A stretch of 64,000 nucleotides of DNA from Paragordius varius (lineage: Eukaryota > Animalia > Nematomorpha), in contig OZ176055.1 in NCBI GenBank assembly GCA_964247055.1, positions 7,316,001-7,380,000 of the forward strand, written 5' to 3'. Positions within the stretch are counted from its first letter, which is position 1. The number at the start of each line of letters is the position of its first letter. Under the pieces are notes generated by a model. The model was not told the origin of the DNA. It was given only the letters and a program-made list of their open reading frames with translations, and searched no databases. Positions 1-30,567 of the stretch are shown here, piece after piece. Both the position numbers and the translations under genes were made by a program.

Positions 1-866
1 GGCCTGGGCCATATTAGAATAAATTCAAAAAACCAAAAAATATAAAAACAGCAGTTTTAGAAGAGAAAATGCATTGTAACTGTAAACTTATTAAATAATC
101 CTTATAAATGTCCAAAAATGCCTTAAACTTTGTTTTTAATCTTTGGACTTTCGAAATTATAAGCCTCCTTAAGGAAATAAATTATTGATGAGAATGTAAT
201 TTTTTTAAAAAACGAAAAACTTTAAAATGGCTGTTTTGAATGACATAAAAGTAATAAATTAGTGTTTCAAAGATAAAAACTCTCTTGAGTTATCTTTTTT
301 GGACATTCCTTGCCATCTAGACAAAGTTTAAGCTATTTTCATCCATTAGTTTAAAAATATATTAATTACGAAAAACGCTCTCGCTTCGCAGGTTTGTCGC
401 TTCCTATGTCCAATATTAACTATCGATGTAAATAAAACATATTAGTATGCATTTTATAGAGTTTTTATTACTCTTACGAATGATATATTACCGGGCATTT
501 GTTGTATATCAAAGAAAAACATTTTGTTATAATTTTTATTTCAGATTTACTGTTAGGATGATAGTAAATATCAGAAAATGCCTAAAACTCGAGTAGCAGA
601 AAAAATTGTTGTCTGTAGTTATAGGTTGTTTAATCCATTTTTAATAAAGATAACTTAACAGCCTTTAACACAGTTACTATTTTTTTTAAACACTAACTTT
701 CGATGATGCAAGCATTCCTCTCTATATTATTTGTAGCTTTTTTCCTCGATTAGAGCTTTTTTACGATAGTACAAATAAGGGGTTGGAGGTAACTAAGAAT
801 GCACTCATGACAATCAGGCCTTTAAATACCAGTTAAAAGCTTTCAATTATATAATTTTATAATATA

Positions 867-3800
867 CTAGCGTAAATCTCGGGCTGCTACGCGAGGAAGT
901 CCTTCAGACTTCTTAGGGGGGTTTATTGAAAAAAGGGATCAACAAAATTGTGGTCCATATATGTAGATTATTTCGAAACATTATTTAATAGTTATGATCT
1001 CATAGGATTTTAAAAACGGTGCTTCATAGAATACTATGCATTCATACTAATATATTGTTTACTGGTGTGAAGGCCCCAAATCGACTAGCGGAAAAAACCG
1101 CTATATAATTTTTACATTTTTATAGGTGTTATTTAAAGACTTTATTGAACTCGTATGGCTTCTTAAGTTTTTTAAAAATTAGCTCCAAAACTACGCCATT
1201 TTTGTATGGAGTCTCGGTTTTAAACCCCTACCCACAGACCTATATGGAAAAAGCGCTAAGTTAAAATCTTTGCCTTTATAGGGAAAATATTTGGAATCAT
1301 CTCTGATACCATCGTCTCCTGGATTATTCGAAAAATACCTCACTAAATAATCATTATATGATGGCATTTTAGGGCATAAAGGCCCCAAATCGCATGACCC
1401 CAATTTTTACCTAGTTACGGTTAATATTTCAAGCCTTTAATGAGCTTATATGGCTTCATAAATTTTCTGTAAATACGCAATTTCTAAATAGTGGCGCAGT
1501 TTTTAGAGGGTAGCTGCTTACTCAGGGGCTAGTATAAAAAGTGTTGGGCAAAATTTTTGCCTTTATATGGGGAACAGCTGCAATTATCATGGATTCCATA
1601 TGTTCCTATAAATTATTGGAAATATTGCTTTAAACTAAAAAAACATTCTATGGTGGCGCATTTTTAAGGGCGTGAAGGGCCTAATTAACGGCTAATTTTT
1701 AAAAACCCCACGACCTAAATTTTTGCCTTGTTATGGGTATTATTTTAAGCACCTATTGAACTCATATGGTCTGATATGTTTTCTGAAATTTAGCTCCAAA
1801 GGCACGGTATTTTGATATGACGAATCGGTTTTAGCGGGTATCTCCTTATCCGGCAGCCAATATAAAAGAAACGCTCGACTAAAATTTTTGCCTTTCAACA
1901 GGGAATACCTGGAATCCTTATTAAATTTTTACTGTCTATGCTTCTCTGTGACGTAGTCTAACCGATAATCATTCTTAATAATTTGCAATAAATAGAGGTA
2001 ATGGAGATAAAATAATAATAAAAATATTTAATAAAAAGAATGTCTTTAATTATTTTTTTTACGGGTTTTTGTATAGGCTAGCTCAAATATTTACTCGAAT
2101 TGACCATATTTAAACTGTTCCTTATGAAAGTTAATATTCAACTATCATTGGATTTAATTCAAGATTTTCGTTTTACGAAATTATGGTTAGAAGTTTTATT
2201 TTGAAATTGTGTTCACACAGCTGGGATCAAGGGATATAAAAAGTAACTCATTTTTGGTCCCTTTTTAAAGAAAAGAATATACAAATTCGCCAGATATGTG
2301 TTTAACCGAACTCGTATGTCTTCTTAAGTTTTTTAATCAGCTCCAAAACCACGCCATTGTTGTATGGCGTCTCAGTTTTGGACCGGTAGACCCCTACCCA
2401 TAGACATATATTTGAAAGCTCTGATTTAAATTCTTTGCCTTTATATGGCAAATATTTGGAATCATTTTTGATACCATCGTCTCATGGGTATTCGAAAAAT
2501 TACCTTAACACTAAATAATCGTTATATGAAGGCGTATTTTTAGGGGCATAAAGGCCCTAAATAAACGGCTGATTAAAAAAAGCCTGACCTTTTTTATCTA
2601 GTTAAGGGTAATATTTTAATCTTTTAATGAACTCATATGGCTTCATAAATTTCTGTAAATTACCTCCAAAACAACGCGATTTCTATATAGGGCGCAGTTT
2701 TTCTAGTAGCCCCTTACCCAGCCAGGGGCAGGTATAAATAAGCTTTGAGCAAAATTTTGCCTTTATATGGGAAACTGGAATTATCATGGATTCTATATCT
2801 TCCTATTAGACATATAGGTTTCTGAAGTTTGGCCCAAAAAGCATGCTGTATCGATATGGTTTCGCAGTTTTATGCGGATAGCGCCCTAACCAGGGGCGAA
2901 ACAAAAAAACGATCGATTTAAATTTTTACCTTGATTTATGTAATACCTGGAATCATGACTAATTCTATATGCTCTTGTGGGATTTTCGAAAAATGCTTTA
3001 AAACCAAAAAGTGATTCTATGGTGGCCCATTTTTCAGGGCAAGGGCCTAATAGAGGGTTAATTTAATAAAACCGCTCTACTTAAATTTTTGCGTTTTTAC
3101 GGGTAATATTTCAAGCCCTTTAACTCATATGTGATAAATATTAATTTGCCTCCAAAGTCACGCTGTATCGATATAATGGCGCAGCTGTTGGCGGGTAGCC
3201 CCCTACCCTGAGATAAATATAAAAAAGACGCTTAAAATTGCCTTTATAGGGAAATGCCTAGAATCATCATTCTTTCAATATGTTCTGATTAGTTTTTTGG
3301 AAGAATGGCTTTAAAACTAAATAATAGTTCACTGATAGCGCATTTTTTAGGGCGTAAAGGGCCTAATTAATGGCTAATTTAAAAAACCGCTCGAATCAAG
3401 TTTTTGCCCTTTTACAGGTAATATTTCAGGCCCTCATTAAACTTATATGGCCTGATAGGTTTTCTGAAAATTAACTCCTAAAGAATGCAATTTTGATATG
3501 GTGGCGGATTAGGCGTGTAGCTCCCTACCCATAGGCTGATACAAAAAAAGCGCTTGATTAAATTTTTGCCTTTTTACGGAGAATATCTGGAATTATGATT
3601 GATTCCATATGCTCTCATTAGTTTTTGGAAAAAATACCTTAAAACTAAAAAATCATTCTATGGTGGCGCATTTTTAAGGGCATGAAGGGCCTAATTAGCA
3701 GCTAATTTTAAAAAAACCGCACCATCTAAATTTTTGCCTTGTTACGGGTAATATTTTAAGCAGCTATTGAACTCATATGGCCTGTTAGGTTTTCTGAAAA

Positions 3801-4329
3801 GCCCCAAAGGCACGCTGTTTCGATTTAACGGGTAAGTTTTTAGCGGGTATCTCCTTACCCAGCAGCTATCATCAAAAAAACTCTTGACTAAAATTTTTGC
3901 CTTTTAACAGGGAATACCTGGGAATCTTATTTGATTTTTACGGTCTTATACTTTGGGCGAAAAATAGATTCAAAAAATATTTTTGTGGACTTAAGCAGGT
4001 AAAAAGAGGGCCTAAATTAAAAAAGCGAGCCGACTATGTTCGGTGCAATCCAGAAAAAGTCAAAAAAAATCATATTTGAAATCGAATGGTCCAACACGTT
4101 TTCCGGAACATTGTCTCAAAGACATAATTTTTGTGGACTTGTGTTTTCTAAAAAACCCGTTTTTACACGGGGTGGGTCCGAACTGGGGGCCTAATTAAAA
4201 AAAGGGCGTAGCTATTGTCGGGGCATTCATTAATGATTATATTTTTTCGATATTTGGATTTGAATGGGTCTACCGGTTTTCCGGAAACAAATCACAAAGC
4301 CACCACTTTCCATTTTATACATATATAGA
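867..4329 (-). mobile_element. Non-autonomous Helitron-like element (longest copy) with internal tandem-repeat array
   Basis: On the minus strand it starts A|TCTATATAT at 4329 and ends GCAGCCCGAG-ATTTACG-CTAG|T at 867. This gives the TC...CTAG termini, A|T insertion site, subterminal hairpin and no TSD expected of a Helitron. The interior has recurring ~160-170-bp units containing AAATTTTTGCCTTT. No Rep/helicase ORF. The same termini recur at 26358, 29394 and 46748. Confidence 0.85.
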
Positions 4330-5068
4330 TTATTAATAAAACTTAGCATAGTGGTAAATACCTATATTCAATAAGGAAATATATTAATATTTTATCAAAA
4401 TTTTATGGTTTGTAACTATAAAGCCAATTTAAATCATTGTTAAAGGAAATTTTTTACATTTGCAGTAGGGATGTTGCATTTATAAGCGGTCAGACCAGCA
4501 ATTTTTTCTAGACAGGTTAAAAACTCAACCTAATATACGAGATATTTTTTAAACCGTATACACAGTTACCACTTTCCTTTAATCCAATTTTAGATTGTCA
4601 AATGAAATCTAATATAACTCATTTAAATCTATCTTCAATAGGACTATTTACATCTTGTTAATATGTTTAATTAAATTTAAGTATGTATGGTATAATTATG
4701 TAATGATTAATGATATGATATTGGTCCCTTGTTTAAAAAACATCAAAATAAAATTGTTTAAAGTAAACCTTGATATAAAAGAAGGCAAATCTTACCATAT
4801 AATTTATTTAAATCATTTATATAAAAAAAAATTTAAACTGGCAAATTTAAGGGAGATATCTCTTCTAATTTGTTACTAATGTTAAAGATAATGATAAAAT
4901 CATTGTAGTGTTGTACTGTGAAAAGATATATAATTTTAATATAAGTGCCATCCAGCGCAATTAATTTCTAGGCAAAAAAACAGCAGGGGAGCATTGCTTA
5001 ACGCAGCAGCATATTAATTATTTATAAATCACTCACTTTTTTTATTTTATAGTTTATATTTTGCAGAC

Positions 5069-6450: not shown

Positions 6451-8471
6451 ATATATTTCCCAAAACATTTCAATACGGAAGATGCGTATCGATAATATAT
6501 TTTATGAAATATATTTTTTCAATCAAAGCAATTTTATCAGCTATAATTTTGAAATAGTCTTTATATGTTAATAAATTTATACCTAGCTGAGATAAAAAAC
6601 TTTCATCAAATCTGTTTTGTTTTATATATAAAATATGGAAAAAAGTAAAAGTAAAAAAGTCAAACACAATAAAAACCGCACAAAAAGGGGTTTGATTGTA
6701 TGGAGTACAATGTGCATAACTTTATATTTAAGGTTCGGTGATCCAATAAATAAGGTCATATCAAACTTTTAGAGGTTATTGCACATTTTTCATATAACAT
6801 TATTGATTTGATGATAATTGGCGTTATTTTTACATTTTTGAATTAAAACCATTTGATTGCCAAAATGTTTGAATCTTAAATCCTAATTATTTCCACTAAT
6901 CCTAATGTTTTGGTCGTAAAGGATACCTGTACCCATATAAGTTTAATTATATTACTCATGTATTAAATATAACATTATATATTTGATGAAAATTTATTTA
7001 GTCAAAATAAATGATATGGCGTTATTTTTCTAAAAGTTAAGCAACCTTTTATTATTATATAATACATTTTTTAATTTGATTTAAAAGCATTTCATTAATT
7101 TTTGCCAAAATGTTTGAATCTTAAATCCTAATTATTTCCACTAATCCTAATTACATAATTATTTAAGTATTTATTTATATTAGTTTCTTTAAATACAAAT
7201 TATATTTCGCTAAATTAATTCAGTTTGTCGTCAAAGGGTACCTCTACCTATGAATTATAAGTTCAATATATACTCATGTACATCTGTAATTCAATTCTTA
7301 TGTAAAGAAAAAATTTTACAATATAATACACTAATTAATATAATAGAGCCTAATCTATACGGTAGAAGCTTTAGAATTAATTAGAATTAATCAGATTACT
7401 TAGGTTACAATATTGATAAGTACTGAGAATTTAACTGATGTCTGCCGTAAAAACTTGAACAAGTTTGATGTAAAAAGATAAGGTAAACAAGGTCGAAAAA
7501 GCTTATACAGTATGCATTACATTATTTTTGAAGAATTGTCAATATAGTAGCGTAGGGTTATGAAACAACAAATGGTTGCAATTACAATTATATCCTATTT
7601 TACAACATTAAATTTTATTTAATTATAAATAAAATTTGTTTTATACAATATGCTACTGTATTACCGAGTGACCGACAATAATATGAATTGATTAACATTA
7701 CTCTGCATACTGCTGTAGTCATCTTCAAAAATGCAATTAAGTAAGGCTCGTATTATATTTCTATGTTTTTTTAAGTTATACTTTTAGGATCTGATTATTT
7801 TCGGCTTCCTCTATATTAATTAGAAATCATTTTTAAATCTTTTAAATTTAATCCTATCATACATAACCTTTTAAATACTTGTCTTATTAATCCAAATTTT
7901 TATATTCTTTTTTTGCAAAATATAGGAAAAGGGGTGTCTATAACCCCATTTTGTTAAAATTTTTCCAACAACAGTTGGTTTTGGTAAACATCAAAAGTCT
8001 AGGTATTGGACAATACTATAAATATATTAAAGTCATATGAAATTAATGTGTAGAAACGATTGTAACACACATATATATATTTATATATAATAAAAAAATT
8101 TTTAATCCGATATATTTATATTAATGACATATAGCAAGCTTAAAATATCATTAATAATCTATATTATTAATATATATATATATATATATATATATAATTG
8201 ATTCACACAGCATATTTTTGGAGAGGGGATAGGTATCATTGATTAGTTTTTAAACGTATTTGCTTTCTAAATTAAAGATATTTTATTTGTTAACCTTTTC
8301 TGTTTTTCCCTCTCTGCAGGAAGGATTTAAGTCAGTCCTACCATTACTTTTGTAATTTTTTGTATAATACAAAACTTGAATTTTGAAGAAAAAACATATT
8401 TACACCCACTTTATTATAATTAAAAATTCATCCTCAGTATATTTTCATTTTCAATTTTTTATCCCAAAAAA

Positions 8472-8895
8472 ATGTTGTTTAATACGGCTTCAAAGATCCA
8501 TAAATTGGTATGTACTATCATATTATTATTACTTATTGCTGGGTTTGACAATCCTGGAGTCGCCAAAGTCTATGCTTTGACTGAACCTCAATTTGAAAAC
8601 AGAGTTTAGTAAGTATTAATAATCACTTTACAGACTTTTCGACCTTTTCATATTACTCATTAAATAATTTTTAAATTGAGCTCGTAAGCACTAAATAATA
8701 TAATATAGGGTTGTCAATTGCCCCCAATTATATTTATAATTTTAAAATTTTAAATTAAACTTTAATTCTTTTAGTGAAAGAAGAGCAGCTGCTTGGGTCC
8801 CTAGCAGTCGATATGGTCGTTCTGGTCCGGAAAAACGAAGTTTGCCACTATTTTCTCATTTGTGGATTAAAAATAATTTTAATGCAATTTTATAA
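8472..8895 (+). CDS. Neuropeptide precursor (85 aa), predicted mature peptide AAAWVPSSRY-amide, luqin/RYamide-like
   Basis: join(8472..8608,8775..8895), with a phase-2 intron GTAAGT...TTCTTTTAG. Protein MLFNTASKIHKLVCTIILLLLIAGFDNPGVAKVYALTEPQFENRVYERRAAAWVPSSRYGRSGPEKRSLPLFSHLWIKNNFNAIL*. It has a hydrophobic signal-type N-terminus, RR before the peptide, a G-R amidation/cleavage signal and a later KR. A strong upstream acceptor (TTTTTCCCTCTCTGCAG, ending 8319) suggests a 5' UTR intron. Not in the ORF track, which reports only wrong-frame overlaps. Confidence 0.8.
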
Positions 8896-10504
8896 TTTCC
8901 GTAATTTCGTATCGCTTTTTGATGATCATCGCTTTAAATTTGAAATATCATTAATTTTGCAATAAAAGTAATTAGATTTAATAACTATATAATTTTGAAA
9001 AATTAAATTTTTGACATGTAATTTTTCCATAATAATATAGACGGAAATGAATTAGTGTGTTGGTGGGGAGGTCAGGAAATTCGCCCAGGTTATATGATAT
9101 ATATATAACTCAACTTATTTCGTTATAATTTTTAAGCCTTTAGATATTTATTTGGAAATTTTTTTTGTAATGTTGGTAAAAACTAACCACCGCATAGCCT
9201 ATTTATAAAGCGAATTGAATTTTAGTTTTATGGCACGGAAAAATACATGGTTTTTTTATATGATTGAATTAAAAAATCATAACTTAGAGTTAAATCCAAC
9301 CAATTTTGTGCAAAACAAACTGTTTGTTTATAAATTTTTATTTTTGATAAACTCCAAAAGTCTTATAATTTGGAAACCTAATAAAATGGGTTAGTTTGCC
9401 TGAATTGTATACCAATTTTTATAATTGATAAAATTTTCAAGCTACACCGAAAAATTAAGGATTTTTGCGAAAAAGCATAATTTGTTTATTAAAATTAAAA
9501 ATTGGTTCAATTTTACAAATTGCATAAAATTTTGGTGTCCACTACAAAATATTTTGATGATTGAATATAAAAATCCTTAAAAAATCAAACATGTAAAGGA
9601 TGCTAATTTATTAAACCCAATTTGTCGATTCATAGCCATTGTACATGGGTGTATATTCAAAAATAAGTTTTGTAAGAGATAACACAGAGATAAAGATATG
9701 AATCCTACTTAAGACTTGGACCCCCTCGCAACTTGAGTGGGTAATCTTTTATTCGGTTTCAACACCTTTTCTTTTTAAACATGAAGTAATACACATCTAC
9801 AGCCATGATACCAAATATAGCCCCAAAAATTTTAATTTTCTTACGTTTTCTCCTAAAGTGCTTCAATCAAAATTAATGAAATTAAAATTAAATGAATTAT
9901 GGTAATTATATAATCCAGTCCCCATTTTATGGTATTATAAAATATTTAAGCAGTAAATTGGTTATATTCAAAAAATTTATTTAATCTAAGTTGTACTATA
10001 TTGGCTGTTATAATTTTGAAAAATAAATACAATTAATTATATGATTATGGCGAGAATGACGGCAATATATAAACTAAACCTATTTAGGTAAAAAATTATG
10101 AATTTTTTGAAGATTTTAAGCATTATATTAAGTACAGTTATTAAAATATTGATATTATTAAGTATTATACTCTGTAAAATAAAGTAGTTGATAATTATAT
10201 AACATTCATAATGGTGGCTATGACCGTGAATGACCGTATAGAAAAGATAAAAGCTTGTGATTTTTAAATTTAAGGCGAAATTTGAAGGGGCATCGTTTTT
10301 TAAAGCAAAATCCCTCTTTGATTCGAGTAAATTGTTTGTTTTCAAACTGTTTTCACAATATAACAGCATATCAGTGAGCATTCATCTCAATATATTAAGT
10401 TTGGTGTGTTTCAGATTCCAAGGATAAAAATGCATTAGGTATAGTGTTAAGTATTTACTGGTTTTTAGTACATAAAAACACTGTCATTGTAAATTTATTA
10501 ATTT

Positions 10505-11739
10505 TATTTATTTTGCCCATTAATTTCTAAGCATTTCGCCCATCTTTAAACTATTTATATGCTATAAAAACTGATTGTCCTTTGCACCAGTTTTTAAGGT
10601 GTTCTGATCAGCGTATGCTCCATAGATGCAAAGAGGAAATAGTCAGATGGCACCATGGAGGAGTACAGTGAATGTGGAAGAATTTCCCATCTAAGCGATT
10701 TTAGGACATCTATCACTAGTTTTGCAGTGTCATGCAAAATATATTACCATGTCTTCTGGCCCATTTGGTTGTTTTTCGATTATTGCATGACTCATATTAA
10801 TTATTTATTGGCGATAGCGTTGTGAATTAACGGTTTTATCTGCTTCAGAGTTTATAACACACATAACCGCTTTTCACCAAATGGAGGAGCATGGTATTTC
10901 TAGCGAAGTGATTTGGCATTGGTGTAGATGGATCGGCTTGAAATGGAAAAAGCCACGATTTTTTCCGCTTTTAATTTACATTGTAAACCCGCTTCTCATT
11001 CCCCGTTACAATTCGATAAAAATGATTTTGATCCTGAACAGGATTTCACAAGGACTTTGCGATTTTTGATTTGACGTTCATTTAAATTGGGTGATGCCCA
11101 TTGACCGAGCTTTGTCTATCCTATTATTTGTGGACTTATATACCATTTACAGTTCAAATTCACCCTTGAACAATTCAAATTCACCCTCGAACAATTCAAA
11201 TTCACCCTTGAACAATTCAAATTCACCATAAAAATAAATTGTGTGTTTTCGAACTATAATTCATAATATGAAATTTATCTTTATAGCATATTTTATTTTC
11301 TTAGTATTATTTTAATTTGAATCAAAATCTTTATTTTTTAAAAATATAATAATATAGAGGTAATTTTTAATATTGAAAAACATATATTTTAATTGAGGGT
11401 GAATTTGAATTGTTCGAGGGTGAATTTGAATTGTTCAAGGGTGAATTTGAATTGTTTAAGGGTGAATTTGAATTGTAAATGGTATATTATGATATATGTA
11501 ATGCTTCTAATTAGAGTTAAGTCATCATCTAATAACTCGCATTTTATGGTCTTTGTAGTTGGGTCGTCTTCCAAAACGCCCACTCTCTTCGCATTCAAAT
11601 GGCAACTCTTAAAATTTATAAACCATGTTTCAATTAAAGCCTGTTCACCATATGTTTTACCAGCAAAGCTATTCTTCTGAAGAAGTAAAAAAAGTGAGGC
11701 GTGCCGCAAATGTTCTTTTTCAGGCATGAAATTCGACAT
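10505..11739 (-). pseudogene. Decayed mariner transposase, interrupted by a MITE
   Basis: Minus-strand fragments in mariner order: MSNFMPEKEHLRH..., ASPNLNERQ (WVPHEL region), RIVTGNEK, LRWEILPHSLYS...PSDYFLF (YSPDLAPSDY region) and RWAKCLE. Frameshifted. Confidence 0.85.
11141..11484. mobile_element. MITE with TIRs built from 21-bp tandem repeats (copy 1)
   Basis: TA|TACCATTTACA...TGTAAATGGTA|TA. The arms consist of repeated AACAATTCAAATTCACCCTTG in inverted orientation. Sits inside the mariner relic. Further copies at 14499, 20016 and 59993. Confidence 0.85.
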
Positions 11740-12485: not shown

Positions 12486-13553
12486 TCAGCAATTATCAAT
12501 AGATTTGTAATGATCTTCATCGATAGTATTGAATATGTGGCCTTCATTATTTAAAAATTCCAATTCTTTCCTATATATATATATATATGTAAGTTAAAAT
12601 TAGTTATAATTATTATAAATTACACAGACACAAACACACATATATATAATTATAAAATGAATGAAATAGAAATACTCATAAATTTTTTTAAAAATTTCTA
12701 TATACACTTCAAATTTAGCCAAACTCGAAAAAGTGCAAGAGGCATATGAAAAATGAAATTAAAAATTCTATTGTATTCTTTAAATTTAGTCAAAATGAAA
12801 AAAGCGCAGGATGGATATGATAAATAAAATTAAATGTTATATAATTTTGTGATATTATTCTTATTTTTAGATTGTCTTTTTCCCAGACCCCATTTAAATA
12901 TTAAATTCTTGAGTTTTAAATAAACTAACTTTTAATTACAAGTAATTATTTGGTAGCCAATATTTATGCGGTATCAAATTATGTGAAAATAATGCTTTTA
13001 TAAGTTTAAAGTACCCTTACAAAAACACAATACAAAAAGTCTTATAACTGGAGTAAACCAAATAATACACTAACTTATAAACAAATTTTTTATGAATTTT
13101 ATCTTAAACTCAAAATAGCTATTAAGATAACACTTTTTGCGTCTGCCAATAATAAAAAATATCTGGTTTACTATGTTAAATTTTTAAAGTTATATGAAAT
13201 TAGAGTAGTATTATGCGCGCGAATATTGAAGTTATTTGCATCTAATTGTGTATGGGAAAATTTTTTATACTTTTATATAAAAAAAAGGCGTTTTCACAAA
13301 CTCAAACTAAAAAAGGGTGACAAACATTTAAATTTAAACAATTAATTGGAAAAATGAAATCGTTATCTATGTTATACCGTATATTATCTATGGGGACATT
13401 TGGCATTTGTCGTTTAATATCATGCAAAGATGCGCCTTCTTCTGTTCGATTCATTGAAATGACTTTAATTATCTAAAACAAATATAAAATTAAAATATTA
13501 ACGAAAAAAAGTATAAAAATTTGACAAAACACTTTTTTAATACATTTTGGCAT

Positions 13554-13599
<46 letters not shown>

Positions 13600-15676
13600 A
13601 TTATAAAAAATGCATAAATATAATTTCATCTCTATATCGAGGAATTAAAAATGGGTCATTAGCGCAAAACCATAAAAAAGAATAATAAAATTGTAGTATT
13701 TCACATAAAACGAGAATAAATTATCAAGGTTATTTTTGCCGTTTTTTTCCATTCTACCGATTTTTGTAATAATAAAATCGGCTAAACAAAATTATTTATA
13801 TCCAAAAATAATAAATTTATTAGATTACAATTTTTTTGATTTTCTGTGGTTTTTATAATGATAAAAAATAACCTGAATAGCTAACGGTTTTAAACCTGAG
13901 TATCCTTGCGTAAATGTATTATTGATCATAGAATCCTCCATAAGATTACTGTCCATACCTGGAAAAATTTATAGGATAAAATTTTCTGATTAAAAATTTT
14001 TGTTGGCCATCATAATACTTTAATATAAATATTAATTTAATACAAATAAATGTATTTAATTTAAAAGTTTTTTCTAGGCACACTAATACTTATTTTAGGG
14101 GAGATATATTATTATAGGTATTGTACAGTAAATTTAATAACGTTGGAATACACATAGTTCCTTTTCAAATGACAAAAATTCTAACAATTTCGTATTAAAT
14201 AATGATAAAAATACTAAAACCATTATTAGATGGATCATTAAACGGTTGTCGGGAATTAAAGGTATTATCATTATTATGATTGTCGCACATAGCTTTGAGT
14301 TTAGCGTTGGCATACGTTATTTCCAACATATGCAGAGTTAATTCATTCATATCCGTTATCGGTAAGATTTTGAAAGCCAAAACACTCTTTTTACCATTAA
14401 AACTTCGAATGGTTCCAAACACGCGAATGTACGAGTTTTCAGGGTACACAACATTTTTATCTGAGGAGCCACCAAAATCATCGCTAGAATCCTATATATA
14501 CCATTTACAATTCAAATTCACCCTAAAACAATTCAAATTCACCCTTGAACAATTCGAATTCACTCTCGAACAATTCAAATTCACCCTTGAACAATTCAAA
14601 TTCACCCTCAAATAAATTATATGTTTTTTGAGATAAAAAATTTCCAATATATTTTTTATAGTTTTAAAAAATAAAATTTTGTTTTAAATTAAAATAATAC
14701 TGAAAAGTAATAAACTATGCCATAAAGATATATTTCATATTAATAGTTATATTAGTTCGAAAACACATAATTTATTTTTAGGGTTAATTTGAATTGTTCG
14801 AGAGTGAATTTGAATTGTTCAAGGGTAAATTTGAATTGTTCGAGAGTGAATTTGAATTGGAGGGGGAATTTGAACTGTAAATGGTATATATGCATAAGGA
14901 AAAAAGCGATATTTAACACTTGTAATTTTTAAGTGGTGGGTGTGTTATATACAGAGCAAAAATTATTTGAATGCTTATCTTGTGATAAAGTAAACAAACT
15001 TTATTTATTAAGGGACTCTATTATATCCACAAAAACCAAAGATTCATATTATAAGTCTCAAAATATATCAATGTAATTTAAGTAATATCGCATTTTTCAA
15101 AAAATGATGTATAAAAAGTATAAAAACCTATTTGCTGAAATAAAGTATGAGATTAAGGATTGTAGTTGGCATTTTTTAATTTATATTGAGTTAATAGTAA
15201 AAAATATTTTATCGTCCGTTTTTAATGATTTTGTAATGCTATAAATATAATGATTAAGGATAACTAGTTAAATCGATATATAAAATATTAGTAAAAACTT
15301 TAGTATCTATCCATTTTTTAACTTCTATAGTAGGTCCGCTCATATCATCCACATCATAAGTAATGATAGTTGGACTTTCTTTTACCGATTTAATTTTTCC
15401 AACGATTGTAATCTAATTTAAATAAAATGCATTTGTACTGAAAAGATTTAACAACATTTTTTTAAAGCACCTTATCTTAAAAATTAACCTGATGTATTTC
15501 TATATCACCAACCATCAAATTCTCACGAGTTGAATCCAAAGCCAAAATAGAGGCAACGGTACAAGGTAAAAGGTTTTGATTCATAATACGAGACTAATAT
15601 TATTTTAGATTATTACCTTTCCCGAATCTGATGTCATGTTATGGGACGTATTTAAGAAGCCGGCCGATGAATTCAT
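12486..15676 (-). CDS. RPA2: Replication protein A 32-kDa subunit (271 aa; start codon less certain than the rest)
   Basis: complement(join(12486..12570,13378..13472,13873..13958,14221..14491,15299..15412,15489..15593,15617..15676)), 816 nt, all introns GT-AG. OB-fold motifs LLPCTVASIL, ITIVGKIK...YDVDDMSG, YIRVFGTIRSFNGKKSVLAFKILPITDMNELTLHMLE. Winged-helix C-terminus LEFLNNEGHIFNTIDEDHYKSID. Confidence 0.95.
13557..13597. repeat. (TA)n microsatellite (similar tracts at ~5072, 8170, 33182, 60548, 63866)
   Basis: Uninterrupted TA dinucleotide run. Confidence 0.95.
14499..14886. mobile_element. 21-bp-repeat MITE (copy 2) in an RPA2 intron
   Basis: Same TACCATTTAC / GTAAATGGTA termini with flanking TA. 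The source of the spurious LQFKFTL-repeat ORF 14280..14615. Confidence 0.85.
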
Positions 15677-16018
15677 AATATCTTAAAAATTTATGATAAG
15701 CGCCAAATTAAACCCTCGATATATTTTAAAAAAGTATTAATGTGAGCTTACGAATGCCTGAAAATTAAACCATGTGTTAGTTTTTTTTTAAATTTACTTT
15801 TTACAGTGCAATCAGGTAAAAGTCTGTTTAAACCAGTTTTATGGTGTTACCTGAGTCGATCTCATTTTTTTATTTCTCCTTTTCGCTTTACTATTTTATC
15901 ACATAGTTTAAGACGATTAAAAAATTTATTAACACATAATAAATTTAATCAATTATTATTTTATCCGAATTATAATCACGCTCAATTTTTAAGTTATAAC
16001 AAATTTATCCGAAGAAAT
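15677..16018. promoter_or_regulatory. Head-to-head RPA2/FPGS intergenic region, probable bidirectional promoter
   Basis: Only 342 bp separate the two divergent ATGs (15676 and 16019). No TSS data, so promoter function is inferred from geometry. Confidence 0.6.
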
Positions 16019-19000
16019 ATGCAGAATGGTTATTCCAAACATTCTTACGAAGTTTTGACACCCTTTTTCATTCTCTATTCTAGGAAGCAATATTGTGTTT
16101 GAATAAACTGCAAACTAATAAAGACGTTTTGGATGAAATCCGAAAGCACCAGGACAGTTATGCTCTCTTCAATCTTCCAAAAATCAAAAACATTTTTGAA
16201 CGGCTGAAAATTCCCGTATATAATTTTATCATTCTCCCATATTTTTTAGATCAATGAATTGAACAAATTAAATGTAATTCATGTGGCCGGGACTAAAGGA
16301 AAGGGTTCTACTTGTACATTTACGGAACATATTTTAAGGAATCATGGTTACAAAACTGGATTATTTAGGTTTTTTTGAATTTATGTTGTAAATTCTAAAC
16401 TTTTTTGGGTTTTTTTTATCAATAATATAATTTACTTATTACCCACAAACGCTTTTTAGTTCTCCTCATGTTGAAACTATTCGTGAACGTATCAAAATAA
16501 ATGGGCGTAATATTGATAAAAATATGTTTACCACCTATTTTTGGCGCATATACTATGAACTGTTAAAGACTCAGGTAGAAATTTATATTAAATTTCAATT
16601 AATTACTAAATTTTTTCATTATTATATAAATGTTTAAATATTTTTTTAGGGAAATACGCATAATTATATACCCTCATTTTTCCAATTTCTGACGTGCATG
16701 GCCTTATACATATTCCTGAAAGAAAAGGTTTATTCAATACATTTTTGCCTTAAAAAAGGAGAATTTAGAATAATAAATACTTTTATGATTAGGTTGATGT
16801 TGCGATTTTAGAGGTTGGGATTGGTGGACAATATGACTCAACAAATATTATTGAGTATTTATATATTATTTTTAATATAGCCATATTCACTTTTTTTTAT
16901 TAAAAAATAGTTAAAAAAGGTAAATCATGATAAAAGGAAAATAGAATTTTTAGGCAACTATTATTTGAAGGATTTGTTTCCAGTTTCGATTCCTACATTC
17001 TTTTTTTTTAATAGAGCGCTTCTAACTCAATGATTTTATGAAAGTTTTTTTGTTGTGGTTGCATTTTATTTATCTACAAGCCCATACTTTATTATATCAT
17101 CCTCTTAATTATTAGCACTAAATTTTATTAAGGGTAACTTTTTCCAAAACCACCCTAAACAAATTATAAAATAAAAGGCCATAATGAAATGATTAACCAT
17201 TATATTTAATTTGTTCTAAAAAGAAATTTTGATAAATCAATTTTACAACTGCGATTTCGGTTGGAGATAGATGTTCAAAATTTTCGTAACCGTTGTGCTA
17301 TGGTTTCCCTCATATAAAAACAGTTCCAACTTACCACTATATCTCTCACGTTTGTTTTTTTCTGTTACAACTTAAGCAAATATTTTTCAACTTTATTTTA
17401 TATTTTTTACAAAATCACCGTATTATTCTTTTGATGTTTAAGCGTATGATTGTGTTAGATATCTTTAAATAACGTGTATCATATACTGTACCTTTGCCAA
17501 AAATGTTAAATTTTTTGAATGTTATGGCGATCATTCAATTAGCAATTGTAATACCTGAGGTTAGCGCTTAATAAATGTTTTAACGCATAAAACATAATAT
17601 CATTTGTGATGTTTTTGTTTTCATAGTTAATATATTTAAAATTGGCACACGCAAAGATTTTATGTCCAGATATTTTCAAGTTAGAAAACATCAATTATAA
17701 TTGTTAAAAATGTTAAATCGATTATTTTTGAAATGTATAATTACACGTAGTTCGGTCGCAATTGATGTAATTGCCAATCGGTAATGTCAGTAAGATATGA
17801 TACGATTAAGGAAATAGAAAGTTTTTTTTAATCTATATAACATAACTTTTAATATTTTTATAAAATCAAAAATATCTAAAAGCATTTTTGACTTGTATTT
17901 GACTGATGTAACCAACCACTTATTAATACCCCAAAATCAAAAAATTTATCAATCAAAATTAAAATACTAGTGTCATAAAAAATTACAATTTTAGTGTTTG
18001 TATAGAATCTTAAAAAAATATTTTTTTTCATAAAATTAATATTTTTATCATTTATAGCTATTTATCCATAAAAATATGTAAAAATATATTTGGGTGTTTT
18101 TTAAATCGGTCAAATAAAAATTGATATCATATGGATAGAACGTAAAAATATAAATACAAATATTTTTTTCAAAAGACTCGTGTTATAAACTTGATTTTTT
18201 TGAATATAACTTATTTATTTAACCATCGCAAGTAGTGGTTATATAGTCAATCATATATTTTAGAATTGTAATAATACAATTTATATAGCAAAAATTAAGG
18301 TTGTGAAAAAAAATTATTATATTTTAACCTTTTGTCCGTATATAATTTAAAATCTTACTTTAATAAATTCTTAACTTCTCTGGCATAACCCTATCTATAA
18401 TGTGTAGAATAAACGTTTGAGCGTTAGAATAAAAAATGATTATAAAAGAGAAATGTGTGACACAAATGGCTTTATGAGACGCATTTTTGGATTACAAAAT
18501 CCGGTGGTTTGCATTTGAAAAATACGTGGGCATTAACAAATATTTTATTGGATATTAGACTTAGGAAACTCAAAAAACTATTTATTTTAACACTTTTTTG
18601 CTATTTCATTGTCAAAATTTGTTAAGATTTATCGGTAAAATTGTTAAAAAAATATTTTTCTTAGATTTCGTAAAATTTTATATTTAGAATTTTTCGTGTG
18701 CCACGGAAATATTTTTGAGAACCGCATGTAAAACAACCCTAGTTTAAAATATTAGAGTTTTCACTTTTTGCCCGATTTCAATTTTCTCCCAATATTTCAA
18801 AAAATAGGTTGTCAACAAATAAAAATTTTTGCGGCAAACGAATACGCTGGTCATAAGTTATCTCATGAAAAAAAATTTTCCGTTAAAATCTTTTTTGCAC
18901 ACAGTATATTTATGTATGTACAAAGTCAGACCAACTTTTTTTATGATATGCGTAGAAAACCCATAGCATGTGGCATAACATCGATTGGTATAGATCACGT

Positions 19001-22000
19001 TTCTATATTGGGTGATACTCACGCTAAAATAGCTTGGCACAAGGCTGGAATCATTAAAGTATAGTAGTAGAATAATAAATTTGGTCTTGAGTAAATCAAA
19101 CACTTTGTAAGGATGAAAAAGTATTATTTATTTTTATTTCATATTATTTTAGCCTGGAGTTCCATCTTTTACGGTAATGCAACATCCGGAAGCTATGAGG
19201 GTCTTACGAAGACGTGCTCGAGAGAATAAAGTTTTTTTCTAATATTTCCTTATCTAAGGACAAAAAAAATACTTTTTGAGTAATTTGGTATAAAATTTAA
19301 GGATCGGTAAAGATTTTTTTGATATATCTACTATTACTTTACAGTTTGCAACTTTTTGTATTAATCCAACAAGCAAAAGATTCGTTCTTATATACTGGTA
19401 TAATTATTATTTTACGCCTTCCATAAGGGCTTATTTGGAAAATATTTTTTTAATAATTTAAAAATGTGCTTATATTAGCGCCAATATGCCTTTTTACTAT
19501 TTGGTTCAACCATCTAATATGGTTTACAAAAAACAATAAAATCATTAAATTATTCTAACCATAATTCCGCTCTAATATGCAACAAGTTAAGGTATTTCAC
19601 ACCTTTTTAAGTTATAAGCCTTTGAATGATTTAACAAAATTTTACAATACAGTGGTGCTAATTGAGTATTTTTATCAAATAACTTTATACCTTGTGTAGA
19701 GTATATTACAATTATCGCCGCCACTTGATACCTATCATGATATGGATGATCCAACTCAAAATTTAACTGTGTCTCTTAATGGGTTCGGTTCGGTTTCAAC
19801 GACCACAAATGGTCACACTAAAACAACAAACTGTCAAACAAATGGACTTTTAATTTCCAAAAATAATCAATTCAATAATTCTCACAATGAAAACTCTAAA
19901 AATTGTAATGGTTTTGACCACTCTTCAGTCATTGCCTCAACGAATGACATATTCCGTATAAATGCATCACTTGCTATACAAATGGCTAATGCTTTTATCA
20001 CGGCCACCTCAAGTATGCCATCTACAGTTTAAATTCACATTCGAACAATTTAAATTTACATTCTACCAATTTAAATTCACCTAAAAATAAATTATGGGTT
20101 TTTGAACCATTATAACTCATTATTAATATGAAATATATCTTTATGGCATAAATTATCATTTTTCAGTATTATTTAAACAAAATTTTATTTTTAAAAATAT
20201 ATTAAAATATAGGTAATTTTTAATCTTAAAAATAGTATAATTTATTGAGGGGGAATTTGAATTGTTCGCGGGTTAATTTGAATCGTTTAAGAGCGAATTT
20301 GAATTGTAATTGGTATATTATGAAGATTTTTGTGTTTCTAGATCAGTGGTGGTGTACAACACAAGTGGCTTTGCTGACCGCATTCAAAAAATATATGGAC
20401 GTTAACAAATATTTTATTAAATTTTAAACATATGACTGTAAAATTAGTATTTATTTTAACCATTTTTGCGAGTAAAAATCAATTCCACTTAGTTTTCGTG
20501 AAATTTTGTATTTGTAATTTCTTAGAATTATTTTGGAGTGCCGCATGTTGGACACCCCTGTTATAGATAAAAGAGAAAAAAGGTTTCTCAAAAAGTTTTA
20601 TAAAAATATGTTAGTATATAATCAACAACGATTAGAATTGGAACCGCGCTTGGTTTTATTTTTTTTTATTCATCAGAAACATTAAACATTTTTTAATCAA
20701 TATTGTTTCGTTTATGTTTTGTGGCTTTTGAATTTATACAAATAATTATAAATTTTTTAATTTTTTCCCACTAAATCAGAAATTTTTTTCGCAAAAACTT
20801 ATCTTAGCCTAAACATATGTTGGGATTAAAGATAATTGAAAGTAAAACAGTTTAGATTACACTCCCATAACTTTGTGTATCATCAAGCCCTTTTAATAGA
20901 TTTTTTAATTTTTAACCATAAATACTTTATAGTTACCAAGGCAGGATAATTATTTTATGAGATTTTTATTTGTTCATAGATCGAGATGGCGATAAACTTA
21001 ATGAAATCATGAATGATGATGAAAATAATACTTATAACAGTTACGACTTTGATCTTATCAGACAACATGCCAAGGAAGGGAATCAAAGTTTAGATGAACA
21101 AATTGCTGAATATGCCAGAAATGCTGTTTGGTATGATTCTGCTCAAGATGATGAATTACCAGCTTTGGCGCCCACGTTTCCTCTCAATCGTGCCTACATT
21201 AATGGTAAGTTAATAATAAACTATTCTAGGTATTTGACTGTGTACAGTAAACCCGCCCCCCTCTAATGAGTTTTTTTAGATTAATAGCGCTTAGAAAAAT
21301 TACCCAATTATTTTTTCCCACAATCTAGGTCATTTAGGTAGGGGGTGTTCATTGTATACCCCAAAAATTCAAAAGTATATAACGTATTGTAAGATATTTA
21401 TGTCAATTGTTGTGCTCTATTTAGCTCTTGAAACTTGTAAATTGGATGGTAGAACACAAGTCATACCTTTCAACGGACTTAAGTTGTATTTGGATGGAGC
21501 ACATACACAAGAAAGCATAGAGGTAACGTTAAAAAAATCAACTCTTTTTACTTTATTTTTTATATAAAATTATTTTTGCTAATTATTATTAGTATTCTAC
21601 TGAATGGTTTACACAAATGGTTGAAACAGAAGAACATCTTTGCAATAAATCGAGTAACAAATATGCACTTATTTTCAATTGCACTGGAGACCGGGACCCT
21701 AAAACATTGCTCAAACCACTTAAAGTATTGCATCTATTCAAAACAAATATAATAATTTTTGTGCCCCATAATTTTTTATTTATATTTTTTTAAAAAATTT
21801 TAGAACTTTCCATTTTCATTGGTGCTTTTTTGTCCAAACATTAGGGATCATGGGACCCCTAACATAGGTATTAAACCTTTTAGTAGTTTTATCAAATAAT
21901 ACTGCATTTCATTTTACACATTTTTCACGGTTTTTTTCCATTGAAACACCTTTAAACGCTAACGTTTTACATTTCTATGCCGTATATAGAATGTTTCAAT

Positions 22001-22357
22001 GTGACGCTTGATAAAACGCAACAAATGCAAGCATGTATCCGAAATTGTAACATTTGGAATGAAATGAACAAAGATTTGAATCAATCTTGTGGTGATTTGA
22101 ATAAACCTAAACTCAAAGGTGTTGAAGGGAAAGACACATTTTTATGTTGGGACGATGAAAGGCCAAAGCCAAATTTTCTGTTGGATAATAGAGTTTTATC
22201 TTCAACGGCAAGTACGAACGAGGTGGTAGATTGTGTTGATCATGCCATAAAAGCTTGTCAAACACACAATATAAGCCACGTTTTTATCACGGGAAGTTTA
22301 TACTTGGTCGGAGCTGTGCTGCAATATGTTAAAATTCATCGAAAACAAGCGATTTAA
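16019..22357 (+). CDS. FPGS: Folylpolyglutamate synthase (639 aa, 14 exons)
   Basis: join(16019..16051,16084..16215,16250..16368,16460..16574,16650..16727,16793..16854,18956..19058,19153..19230,19700..20012,20980..21204,21425..21522,21593..21724,21804..21867,21990..22357) = 1920 nt in frame. Motifs: P-loop [72 protein letters not shown]. Confidence 0.96.
18765..18907. mobile_element. Terminal arm fragment of the foldback element family, in FPGS intron 6
   Basis: Matches the right arm of the element at 60594-61797 (GCTGGTCATAAG.TATCTCAT...TTTTTTG.ACACAGT). Confidence 0.6.
20016..20315. mobile_element. 21-bp-repeat MITE (copy 3, more diverged) in FPGS intron 9
   Basis: Left end TGCCATCTACAGTTTAAATTCAC, right end GAATTTGAATTGTAATTGGTA|TA. 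The left TA is positions +2/+3 of the intron donor GTA. Confidence 0.75.
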
Positions 22358-26357: not shown

Positions 26358-28288
26358 CCTATATATTTATAAAAATGGAAAATGCTGGCTTTGTGATATT
26401 TTAGGCAAAGCCGGTAGAACTATTCAAATCCAAATGTCAAAAAAATATAATTATTAATGAATGCCCCGACAATAGCTTCACCCTTTTTTGAATTAGGTCC
26501 TCAGTTCGGGCCCACCTCGTGTAAAAAACGGTTTTTTTGAAAGCACAAGTCCACATCGTGTATTTGAGACAATATTCCCCAGAACGTGTCCATTTGATTT
26601 CAAATATGATTTTTTTTACTTATTTTAGATTGCGCCGAACATAGTCGGCTCGCTTTTTTAATTTAGGCCCTTATTTTACCCGCTCCACCCGTAAAATGCC
26701 ACTTTTTTCAAAAAAATTAAGTCCACAAAAATAATTTTTTGATTCTATTTCGCCCAAGGTATAAGGCCGTAAGAATTCAATAAGGATTCCACGTATTCCC
26801 TGTTAAAAGGCAAGAATTTTAGTAATCGTTTCTTTCATGATAGCTGCTGGGTAAGGAGCTACCCGCTAAAAACTGATCCGTAATATCAAAATAGTGTGCC
26901 TTTGGGGCTAAATTTCAGAAAGCCTATCAGGCCATATGAGTTCAATCCGTGCTTAAAATATTATTCGTAGAAAGTCAAATATTTAATCGAGCGGATTTTT
27001 TAAATTAGCGGTTAAATAGGCCCTTTACACCTTAAAAAATGTATCATTGAACTATTATTTAGTTTTGAAGCCATAAACTATTAGTAACATATGGAATGAA
27101 TGATGACTCCAGGTATTCCCGTATAAGGCAGATTTTTTTATCTAACCACATTTTTATATTAGCCTCTGGGTAGGGGGCTACCCGCCTAAAGCTCCACCAC
27201 CATATCAAAATTGCGTTGTTTAAGAGTTAATTTTCAGAAATCAGGCTAAATAAGTTTTATAAGGGCCTGAAATATTACCAGTAAAAAGCAAAAGTTTAAG
27301 TCGAGCGGATTTTTTAAATTAGTGGTAAATAGGCTCTGGGTAAGGGGCTACTTGCGTAAAAATGCGTCACTATATCGATACAGCATGCCTTATGAGACCA
27401 TGTGAGTTCAATAAGGGCCTAAAATATTTAATACCCCTTAAAAAACAAATATTTTAGTATGGGGGTTATTGCTAAGAAAAGTTTTACGCCCTAAAAAATT
27501 CGCCGCCATAGAACAATTTTCTGGTTTTGAAGCAATATTTCCAAGAACTTATAGGAACATATGGACATTATAATTCTAGATATTTCCCTTATAAAAACAA
27601 AAATTTTGCCAGACGCTTTTTTATACCTGCCTCTGGTAAGTACCCGCCAAAAACTGTGCCACTATATAGAAATTCTGTTTTGGAACTAATTTAAAACTTA
27701 TGCCATATGAGGTCTAAAGTATGAAATATTACCTTTAACGGTAAAAATTAAGGTCAGGCCTTTTTTTATTAGCCGTTAATTTGGGGACTTTATCTCCTAA
27801 AAATACGCCATCATACGATTATTTTGTGTTTCGAATAATCCATGAAACGATGGTCTCGAGGAGGATTCTAAATATTTACCTATAAAGGCAAAAAATTTAA
27901 CTTAGCGCTTTTTCCATATAGGCCTATGGGTAGGGGTCGACCGGCTTAAAACTGAGATATCCCTAAAAAATGGTATAGCTTTGGAGCTAATTTTTAAAAA
28001 TAAAAAGCCATACGAGTTCAATAAAAGCTTTAAATATTACCCATAAAAAGGTAAAAATTATAGTATAGCGGGTTTTTCCGTTAGCCGTCAATTTGGGGCC
28101 TTTACATCAGTAAACAATAATTAGTATGAATAAACATTTTTGAAAATCCTATGAGATCATAGCTTTTAAATAATGTTTCGAAATGATCCACATATATGGA
28201 TCATTTTATTGTCCCTTTTTTCAAATACCTCCCTCCCCCAGAAGTCCGAAGGACTTCCTCGGGCGCAGCAGCACGAGATTTACGCTAA
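26358..28288 (+). mobile_element. Non-autonomous Helitron-like element (copy 2)
   Basis: 5' A|CCTATATATTTATAAAAATGGAAAATGCTGG (T>C variant of the TC start). 3' GAAGTCCGAAGGACTTC...GCAGCACGAG-ATTTACG-CTAA|T. The interior is a reverse-complement match to 900-4300. Confidence 0.85.
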
Positions 28289-28529
28289 TATTTTTTTAAA
28301 TTACTATAGTCATTAATAATTTTTTTTGTTACTATCTTGCCCAGTCAGGCGTCACTGTGACATAGTCAAAATTATCATTTATAAATTGATAATATATTTA
28401 TGAACAAAAAAGATTTAGTCACAGACGATTTTCATATTTGGAGGCATATTTAACATAGCTTGTTGCGGTCCTAACCATGTGCTAATTTTAAAAACCTATC
28501 TTAATTCAAATTTTTGATTTTAAAAGGGA

Positions 28530-29090
28530 AATCATTGATATTCTATTTTATAAGGTCTTATAAGGATCCGAAAATTTTCAGAGGCACGTTATTTTTATAT
28601 GGTGTCCTTATATCAGAAGACTAAATCTTAATCAGCAGCTGTTTAAAAATTGCGCCTAATTAAAATTTTTGCCCTTGTATGGGAAATAGCTGAAACATTA
28701 TCCAATCTTTATGGTCTTATAATGTTCCAAAAAGATGCTTCATATTCGGTGCCGCATTTTACAGAGGTTGGCCACCAAACCAACGGTTAAATATAAATAA
28801 GCGCTTAACTAAAATTTTAAAATTTTTGGTTTTACATGAAAAGTTAAACTATTGTAAATTATATGTATACACATAAAAGGGATGAAAAATAGCTTTAGAC
28901 TCACGTTATTTTTATATGGTGGGGTCAGCGCCATATTAATAAAAAGCACTCTATTTTTGTCTTTATAATGGGAAAAACTAAACCCATATCGATTTGTCAT
29001 AGTTTCGGAGGCTTAAGTTTTTTGATAAATATGTTGTATTACGAGAGTAGCGTCTAAATACGGGGCCTAATTTTACAAACCGAAAGATTA
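28530..29090. repeat. Diverged units related to the Helitron internal repeat, without termini
   Basis: Contains AAAATTTTTGCCCTTGTATGGGAAATAGCTG, similar to units at ~1550-1580. Boundaries approximate. Confidence 0.45.
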
Positions 29091-29393
29091 TGTTTCGCGG
29101 ATTCGTAAAAAAATGCAAAAATAAATATTAATAATTTTGTGCAGCTGTGTCTAACCAAAAATTATATTTATAATTCGTTTATGTTCGCATTGAAATTGAT
29201 AAAACAACCTTATTCCTTTGTTAAGATGTATTTAAATATAATTTATTCAATTAGAGCAAAAACGTATCCAAATTATATGTAAAAACACTTCCTTCATATA
29301 ATATAAAGCATCTATGAGAGAATTTCATAGGTATAAAAGCGTAAATAACAACATTTAATAATTTATTAAAATCGTTAAGTTTTTTTCATGTAA

Positions 29394-30567
29394 TCTATAT
29401 ATTTATAAAAATGGAAAATGCTGGCTTTGTGATCTGGTACAGGAAAACCGGTAGACCCATTCAAATCCAAACTTCGAAAAAATATAATCATTAATGAATG
29501 CCCCGACAATAGCTTCGCCCTTTTTTTGAAATAGGCCCCCAGTTCGGGCCCACTCCGTGTGAAAAATGGGTTTTTTTGACACAAGTCCACAAAAATCGTG
29601 TCTTTGAGACAATTTTCCGGAGAACGTGTTGGACCATTCAATTTCAAATATAATTTTTGTTTAATTATTTTCGATTGCGCCGAACATATTCGAGTCACTT
29701 TTTTGATTTAGGCCCTCTTTTTACCCGCTACCCCCGTAAAATGCCATTTTTTTCACAAAACAAAGTCCACAAAAATAATTTTTTAAATCGATTTTTCGCC
29801 TTAGGTATGAGACCGTAAAATTCAATAAAGATTCCACGTATTCCCTGTTAAAAGGCAAAAATTTTAGTCAAGCGTTTCTTGAATGATAGCTGTTGGGTAA
29901 GGAGCTACCCGCTAAAAACTGATTTCTCATGTAACTTTGTGATCTGTTTCCGGAAAACCGGTGAACGCAATCAAATCCAAATATCGAAAAAATATAATCA
30001 TAAATAAATGTCCCGACAATAGCTTCGCCCGTTTTTAGAATTAGGTCCCCAGTTCGGGCCCACTCCGTGTGAAAAATGGGTTTTTTTGACACAAGTCCAC
30101 AAAAATCGTGTCTTTGAGACAATTTTCCGGAGAACGTGTTGGACCATTCAATTTCAAATATGATTTTGTTTACTTATTTTTGATCGCGCTGAACATAGTC
30201 GACTCACTTTTTTGATTTAGGCCCTCTTTTTACCCGCTACCCCCGTAAAATGCCATTTTTTTCACAAAACAAAGTCCACAAAAAAAATTTTTTAAATCGA
30301 TTTTTCGCCCTAAGTATGAGCAGTAAAAATTCAATATGGGTTCCACCTAATCCCTGTTAAAAGGCAAAAATTTTAGTCAGGCGTTTCTTTGATGATAGCT
30401 GCTGGGTAAGGAGCTACCCGCTAAAAACTGATTCCTCTTGTAACTTTGTGATCTGGTACCGGAAAACCGGTAGACCCATTCAAATCCAAACTTCGAAGCC
30501 ACCCCCCCCCCCCCCAGAAGTCCGAAGGACTTCCTCGGGCTGCGTAGCAGCACGAGATTTACGCTAG
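29394..30567 (+). mobile_element. Non-autonomous Helitron-like element (copy 3) with internal ~500-bp tandem duplication
   Basis: A|TCTATATATTTATAAAAATGG at 29394. Ends CTCGGGCTGC-GTA-GCAGCACGAG-ATTTACG-CTAG|T at 30567. The segment at ~29430-29935 is repeated at ~29936-30460. Confidence 0.88.

Follow-up and report, generated by a model that had tools for sequence, protein, structure and literature searches.

Luqin-family neuropeptides are peptides of about 10 residues with an RF-, RY- or RW-amide end, and the C-terminal part of their precursors contains two cysteines (PMC5576490, PMC7041311). Among spiralians, the peptide reads APSWRPQGRF-amide in Aplysia and QWRPQGRF-amide in nemerteans and brachiopods, where the peptide and its processing signal read QWRPQGRF-G-KR (PMC8557429 supplement). 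In Caenorhabditis elegans, the small LURY-1 precursor (89 residues) gives rise to PALLSRY-amide and AVLPRY-amide, which are 6-7 residues long and contain no Trp, and has a C-terminal Cys pair with a spacing of 8; these ligands and their receptor NPR-22 have been demonstrated experimentally (PMC5576490). The Drosophila RYamide precursor yields two peptides with an FF core, including RYamide-1 (PVFFVASRY-amide; receptor CG5811), and one Cys follows the second of these at a short distance (PMC8557429 supplement). The RYamides of Priapulus caudatus are intermediate in that they combine a QWRP start with an RY-amide end, whereas tardigrade precursors contain one peptide each, one of the paralogues being devoid of the second Cys (PMC7041311). 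We found no catalogue of hairworm neuropeptides in the literature, and a 2024 study of nematode FLP peptides named hairworm genomes as the missing outgroup.

Here we describe a locus of the hairworm Paragordius varius, situated in a strongly AT-rich stretch of 64,000 nucleotides (GC 0.25-0.33; hereafter, the window), that with high probability is a real gene. Its membership in the luqin/RYamide-type (LURY-like) family is probable, and the combined reading, a genuine gene of small size and several exons that encodes a hairworm neuropeptide precursor of the luqin/RYamide type (nematode LURY-like), is the one that we favour, with some reserve. The features of the locus are collected in Table 1.

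Table 1. Features of the predicted precursor gene and its surroundings (positions are those of the window)
Feature	Position	Strand	Description
Window	G000:C6:7316001-7380000		assembly size 110.5 Mb
Exon 1	8472-8608	+	ATG at 8472; 45 codons; leader and short spacer
Intron 1 (putative)	8609-8774	+	166 bases; GTAAGT...TTTTAG; GC 0.22
Exon 2 core	8775-8839	+	(Y)E-RR-AAAWVPSSRY-G-R-SGPE-KR; GC 0.51; phase 1 at end
RR cleavage pair	8779-8784	+	upstream of AAAWVPSSRY
Predicted mature peptide	8785-8814	+	AAAWVPSSRY; 10 residues
CAGCTG word	8786-8791		within exon 2; sole copy between 3182 and 23143
Gly amide donor, then Arg	8815-8817, then 8818-8820	+	P4 = Arg
KR pair	8833-8838	+	after S-G-P-E
TAA stop of the 85-residue model	8893-8895	+	
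Intron 2 (probable)	8840-9040	+	201 bases; GTTTGC...ATATAG
Exon 3 (probable)	9041-9088	+	48 bases; (N)GNELVCWWGGQEIRP(G..); first Cys of luqin-type C-terminal motif
Last-exon candidate (weak)	12871-12923	+	D-C-LFPRPHLNIKFLSFK-stop; acceptor TCTTATTTTTAG; AATAAA at stop

Comparison with known luqins and RYamides

A peptide of about 10 residues that ends in R-F/Y/W and is followed by Gly and a basic site is found at 8779-8820, with amidation predicted. Counted from its C-terminus, Trp is at position -7, Pro at -5, Arg at -2 and an aromatic residue at -1, which agrees with a preliminary description of this DNA that had pointed to the W-x-P spacing and the RY-amide-type end. All four positions are shared with the spiralian luqins, as are the length of about 10 residues and the presence of one peptide per precursor; the spiralian forms differ in their RF-amide end, in a peptide that abuts the signal peptide and in the C-x10-C motif, which is present in all sequences compared. 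The mixture of luqin and RYamide features, the novelty of which had been implied, is already described in Priapulus caudatus (PMC7041311). The Priapulus precursor is, like that of the hairworm, an ecdysozoan one with a luqin-like start and an RY-amide end, but it contains W-R-P, two peptides and a proven C-x10-C, as opposed to W-V-P, one peptide and only the first Cys in the hairworm.

The C. elegans LURY-1 precursor resembles that of the hairworm in its small size, its place in the luqin family and its S-R-Y or P-R-Y amide ends, and differs in the length and composition of the peptides and in the spacing of its cysteines; furthermore, the nematode ligands and receptor rest on experiment, whereas the hairworm pair is predicted from sequence. 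The proposal that R-Y-G-R constitutes a favourable context for monobasic cleavage has a close parallel in Drosophila, where the RYamide precursor is identical over the six residues S-R-Y-G-R-S (PMC8557429 supplement). RYamide-1 additionally shares the aromatic residue at -7 and an S-G soon after the cleavage site, the differences being the two peptides and the FF core of the fly precursor against one peptide and W-x-P in the hairworm. The single peptide copy, which had been listed among the departures from typical precursors, is indeed seen here and has a precedent in tardigrade precursors, which also have single peptides (PMC7041311). These tardigrade precursors, likened to that of the hairworm on the basis of their published description, are ecdysozoan and encode one RY-amide peptide (PMC7041311).

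Some resemblance extends to the surroundings of the cysteine in exon 3, which read LVC-WWGGQEIRP- in the hairworm, TLC-LKIDVEGNYK-C in Glottidia and LEC-NPIGIEQLYH-C in Daphnia, the three sharing a hydrophobic residue in front of the Cys as well as Glu at +6. These comparisons of precursors (sequences from the PMC8557429 supplement) were made by eye, and the resemblance involves few residues and is not a statistical one. Word searches for precursor homologues with the exon 1 ORF and the exon 2 frame returned nothing and a look-alike search of the atlas gave no usable match, both results being uninformative because a length filter excludes full-length precursors.

Gene structure and predicted processing

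The sequence elements of the spliced anatomy proposed in the preliminary description, that is, an ATG leader, a GTAAGT donor, a TTTTAG acceptor and the succession RR...G-R...KR, are all present. The last two bases of exon 1 belong to a split Tyr codon (TA|T), and the acceptor TTTTAG (8769-8774) places the boundary TTTTAG|T at 8774|8775. The leader, which had been described as hydrophobic, passes a crude signal-peptide test based on hydropathy, charge and the residues at -3 and -1. Its top 12-residue hydropathy window scores 3.36, the n-region has a charge of +2, the h-region covers approximately residues 12-25, and small residues permit cleavage after G24 or A31. The same test was passed by just 4 of the 127 ATG-initiated ORFs of at least 40 aa in the window (3%).

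On the basis of this arrangement, a processing route can be proposed in which the leader would bring the precursor into the secretory pathway and a prohormone convertase would cleave after RR and, in addition, after the single Arg that closes R-Y-G-R or at the KR pair five positions further on. A carboxypeptidase would then remove the basic residues, and peptidylglycine alpha-amidating monooxygenase would convert the Gly into a C-terminal amide, yielding AAAWVPSSRY-amide (calculated MH+ 1106.574), which would act on the RYamide-type G protein-coupled receptor described below. The precursor itself would run on past 8839, via 9041-9088 and a further exon, into the Cys-containing C-terminal part of the family. 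We infer transcription, splicing, processing, amidation and receptor pairing alike from the DNA. Components compatible with such a route are encoded in the genome: an amidating-enzyme-like exon was found with PF03712 (best solved relatives PAM, E = 1e-9) and domains of the prohormone-convertase type (P_proprotein) are present at two loci; the search of the genome with Pfam PF01082 gave no match.

A second copy and the 3' end of the gene

The peptide-gene locus is single-copy across the 110.5-Mb assembly, and a genome-wide search of the assembly detected no paralogue. Two of the sequencing runs that were mapped on the locus, X4 and X5, come from one sample, S3, which bears the same species label and is diverged by about 5-8% in the flanking non-coding DNA. 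The orthologous contig of S3 spans 8210-9087; it differs at 36 bases and has 12 gaps. A second S3 contig of about 2.8 kb, present at full depth and with no counterpart in the assembly, aligns to the stretch at two places only, 8769-8843 and 9034 to approximately 9088. The first block, in which there are 3 differences in 75 bases, comprises the exon 2 core together with six bases of the acceptor and four bases on the GT donor side; the second comprises the second GC island and seven bases of the ATATAG acceptor. A contig of X5 joins 8843 directly to 9034, skipping 8844-9033, and continues for 54 letters, to about 9088. Two of the exon 2 differences can be placed, one being synonymous in a Pro codon (8829) and the other falling in the split codon (8839).

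The retention of exons amid surroundings that are unalignable at 85% looks like what purifying selection, or gene conversion, would leave on coding DNA, and the limits of the alignment can be read as marking exon edges. The second S3 copy could be a paralogue or an exon-edge repeat copy. Variation is also found elsewhere in the gene: intron 1 has at least 7 haplotype base differences in its 166 bases, and in run X2 exon 1 has four differences (N4Y, T15A, I16T, F25L), which leave the leader hydrophobic and compatible with a signal peptide.

We think it probable that exon 2 stops at 8839 and is spliced to 9041-9088. The junction from 8839 to 9041 keeps the frame free of stops through exon 3, which is in phase 1 at both ends, has a donor CAG|GTTATA at 9088|9089 and coincides with a GC island at 9038-9103; an indel polymorphism of 1 base at 9126 argues against read-through past this donor. 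With T at +3, both donors, GTTTGC and GTTATA, are weak relative to the general consensus. An alternative donor leading to a Cys-containing exon had already been suspected. The element CGAA|GTTTGC is present, although it is located at 8839|8840 and not near 8849, and the Cys-containing exon to which it leads seems to be 9041-9088, as indicated by the GC island, the open frame and the second S3 copy.

The structure originally put forward was a two-exon gene, with a precursor of 85 residues as the main product, a stop at 8893-8895, no Cys motif and release of a second, non-amidated peptide, SLPLFSHLWIKNNFNAIL. The frame does stay open to 8895, an AATAAA follows about 70 bases beyond, the competing donor GTTTGC is weak, and the full Cys pair is missing in the Drosophila RYamide precursor and in one tardigrade precursor as well. 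Against these points stand a drop in GC from 0.51 to 0.21 exactly at 8839|8840, the interruption of the second S3 copy, which ceases at 8843 and restarts at 9034, and the fact that the next GC island preserves the frame and adds a Cys. The last 18 codons of the 85-residue model (8840-8895) are intron-like, given their GC of 0.21 and the failure of the second S3 copy to align beyond 8843, and they fall outside the conserved block. We accordingly regard the 85-residue form as a rather unlikely main product. Under the structure with exon 3 that we prefer, the SLPLFSHLWIKNNFNAIL tail, which has an intron-like composition and lies beyond the conserved block, belongs to an intron, and no second peptide would be produced.

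With this structure, a second Cys would be expected in a further exon downstream; it was not located in the 6.9 kb searched, where several candidate Cys exons were seen and none could be confirmed. If the C-x10-C spacing of the family holds, the last exon must open with two bases and a Cys codon. The weak candidate at 12871-12923 would yield exactly C-x10-C, has the best acceptor among the candidates and is found only once in the genome; by chance alone, the 6.9 kb searched should contain about one or two sites of this kind. A rival last exon would follow a 48-base intron leading to 9137 and give a Cys spacing of 19.

A candidate receptor

A receptor of the luqin/RYamide type, proposed earlier as something to look for in the genome, was found on the basis of sequence identity at G000:C5:1719356-1726613. 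A genome scan with Pfam 7tm_1 gave 148 matches, and a TM7 pattern, W-L-A-M-S...N-P, selected two receptor genes, this one among them; a TM2 pattern was discarded, since it returned only noise and one gene resembling amine receptors. The best database match of the exon that encodes TM2-4 is a protein of Gordionus sp. (72%), followed by three mosquito proteins annotated as 'RYamide receptor-like' (53-56%). In the reverse search, a mosquito 'RYamide receptor-like' protein matched the TM2-4 exon at 56% and the TM6-7 exon at 54%, whereas the NPF-like receptors of the same genome reach about 32%. The nearest solved structures are NPFF and NPY receptors, which is to be expected since, to our knowledge, the luqin/RYamide receptor family is missing from vertebrates.

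Between TM1 and TM2, the receptor gene contains about 280 residues rich in Asn, Ser and Thr, within one open frame of 580 codons (C5:1718276-1720015, + strand); either the first intracellular loop would be exceptionally long, or the stretch would be an intron free of stops by chance. The second gene selected by the TM7 pattern (C5:2167277-2174107, + strand) has a TM7 that reads WFAMSNSMYNP and a TM2-3 region resembling tachykinin receptors, and is probably a tachykinin-type receptor, as judged by eye. Separately, five near-identical GPCR first exons occur in tandem within 62 kb at C9:4654575-4715960; they amount to a recent local gene expansion and by eye look like the pyrokinin/neuromedin-U type.

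Judging from its sequence, the AAAWVPSSRY gene is the strongest candidate for encoding the ligand of the RYamide-type receptor. Another RY-amide gene is present at G000:C5:12059996-12060024 (- strand; L003:1500-1950), in a single open exon of about 170 codons that contains CAGCTG, has a hydrophobic segment beginning about 35 residues in and ends in KR-ARPLTPLRY-GRKK-stop. We take this gene to be of the P-L-R-F/Y type, with more resemblance to FLP-15/-21 of nematodes, or to sNPF, than to luqin, and it was set aside as a ligand of the RYamide receptor, being PLRY-type and a different kind of gene.

The AAAWVPSSRY locus might also be a real secreted-peptide gene that is not a luqin/RYamide orthologue, that is, one specific to the lineage or related to FLP, sNPF or NPF peptides, with a product acting on another RF/RY-amide receptor, for example an NPF-like one. 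C-terminal RF/RY-amides arose in several families, variants of nematode FLP-19 and FLP-34 end in RY-amide (PMC11658156), NPF/NPY-like receptor genes are present in the genome (e.g., C5:1577139, C2:12975435), and the two-Cys motif is unproven here. We nevertheless consider this origin quite improbable, because the spacing of W-x-P, the residues S-R-Y-G-R-S around the cleavage site, the exon with a Cys and the RYamide-type receptor of the genome favour a luqin/RYamide peptide, and because the hairworm peptide has 10 residues without an L-R-L-R or P-L-R-F core, a type that the ARPLTPLRY gene fits better. The PLRF-amides of the sNPF and FLP-15/-21 type have an x-P-x-L-R-F/Y or R-L-R-F amide core, frequently present more than once; AAAWVPSSRY ends in P-S-S-R-Y. 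Peptides of the NPY/NPF type have about 36 residues and an R-P/Q-R-F/Y amide end; just 10 residues separate RR from Gly-Arg at this locus.

Peptide gene or chance pattern

The bare motif consists of a dibasic pair and, no more than 20 residues further on in an open frame, R-[FYW]-G-basic. Sequence of this composition should contain about 0.3 such motifs per 64 kb; the window has one, at AAAWVPSSRY, and there must be hundreds genome-wide. Since a motif this common arises by chance, the case for a gene rests on the leader, the GC island, the uniqueness of the locus and the second, diverged copy. GC amounts to 0.51 in exon 2, compared with 0.22 in intron 1 and 0.21 in 8840-8895, and peaks at 0.60 in windows of 45 bases, a value that elsewhere in the window is reached almost only by repeats; exon 2 is the sharpest non-repeat GC island in the neighbourhood. 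The more specific pattern W-x-P-x-x-R-[FY]-G-basic has 6 matches genome-wide, of which AAAWVPSSRY is the only one that lies in an open frame and a GC island and has a dibasic pair upstream. Three unlinked places in AT-rich DNA (C4:12611381, C5:7248387, C5:9743249) read W-x-P-F-x-R-F/Y-G-K/R-L with stops close on both sides, and may be due to chance or be relics of one repeat.

If the locus were not a peptide gene, the pattern would have arisen by chance over some other GC-rich conserved element, such as an exon in another frame or on the other strand, a regulatory element or an exon-edge repeat copy. The frequency of the bare motif and the blank exon-wise homologue searches (with the length filter already mentioned) are compatible with this explanation, as are the reading frames of the exon 2 island, where two other frames and also the opposite strand are open. 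All four runs mapped on the locus are genomic DNA, whereas RNA-like runs under the same species label contain next to none of its words, and the exon 1 differences in run X2 are 4 out of 4 non-synonymous. The chance explanation would have to account, on the other hand, for the occurrence in one frame of a unique locus of an ATG with a signal-like leader, a perfect in-phase GTAAGT, RR, Gly-Arg and KR, for a second island that prolongs the same frame with a Cys, for a conserved block whose edge in the second copy lies only a few bases from the predicted splice sites, and for an RYamide-type receptor that would otherwise have no candidate ligand. In view of these observations, we hold a chance pattern to be unlikely and retain the reading of the locus as a peptide gene.

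A minor point concerns the word CAGCTG, which occurs 10 times in the window against 2.7 expected; its presence in exon 2 lends weak support to the gene. Three of the ten copies in the window fall in GC-rich repeat families (1-4400, 27100-30600, 46200-47800), which make up most of the GC islands of the window.

Evolutionary implications

Nematodes are the sister phylum of hairworms. The AAAWVPSSRY gene and the C5 receptor could equally well prove or fail to be the first luqin/RYamide ligand-receptor pair described for Nematomorpha, with a peptide that has the luqin-type W-x-P and an RY-amide end. If the assignment is true, the W-x-P start persisted to the common ancestor of hairworms and nematodes and disappeared independently in nematodes and in arthropods; retention of this spacing in hairworms, as sister group of the nematodes, is of modest evolutionary interest. 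The overall picture of the family is unchanged, as both the mixed luqin/RYamide appearance and the single copy have published precedents. The gene and its receptor would add one data point for the evolution of a system related to feeding and egg laying, and they would supply a defined peptide and receptor for experiments in a parasite that is known to alter the behaviour of its host. The locus also illustrates how readily very small peptide genes with several exons escape notice, or receive a wrong 3' end, in a genome so rich in AT.

Genomic surroundings

A Pfam search of the larger ORFs of the window produced zero matches, and no tRNAs were found in the window. A neighbouring multi-exon gene at 15500-22357 (+ strand), with a P-loop exon near 16273-16330, resembles folylpolyglutamate synthase; for its last exon, of 126 residues, an exhaustive representative search found no relatives and one irrelevant match. 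A short tandem repeat at 11389-11470, 14540-14615 and 19990-20080, whose frames read FKFTLEQ and RVNLNCS, recurs at several places and terminates several long ORFs, and is probably a piece of a dispersed repeat. Downstream of the peptide gene, at 9711-9768, 56 reference bases are replaced by 18 other letters in a structural variant common to runs X2, X4 and X5, and mariner-like remains are located at approximately 10.5-11.8 kb of the window.
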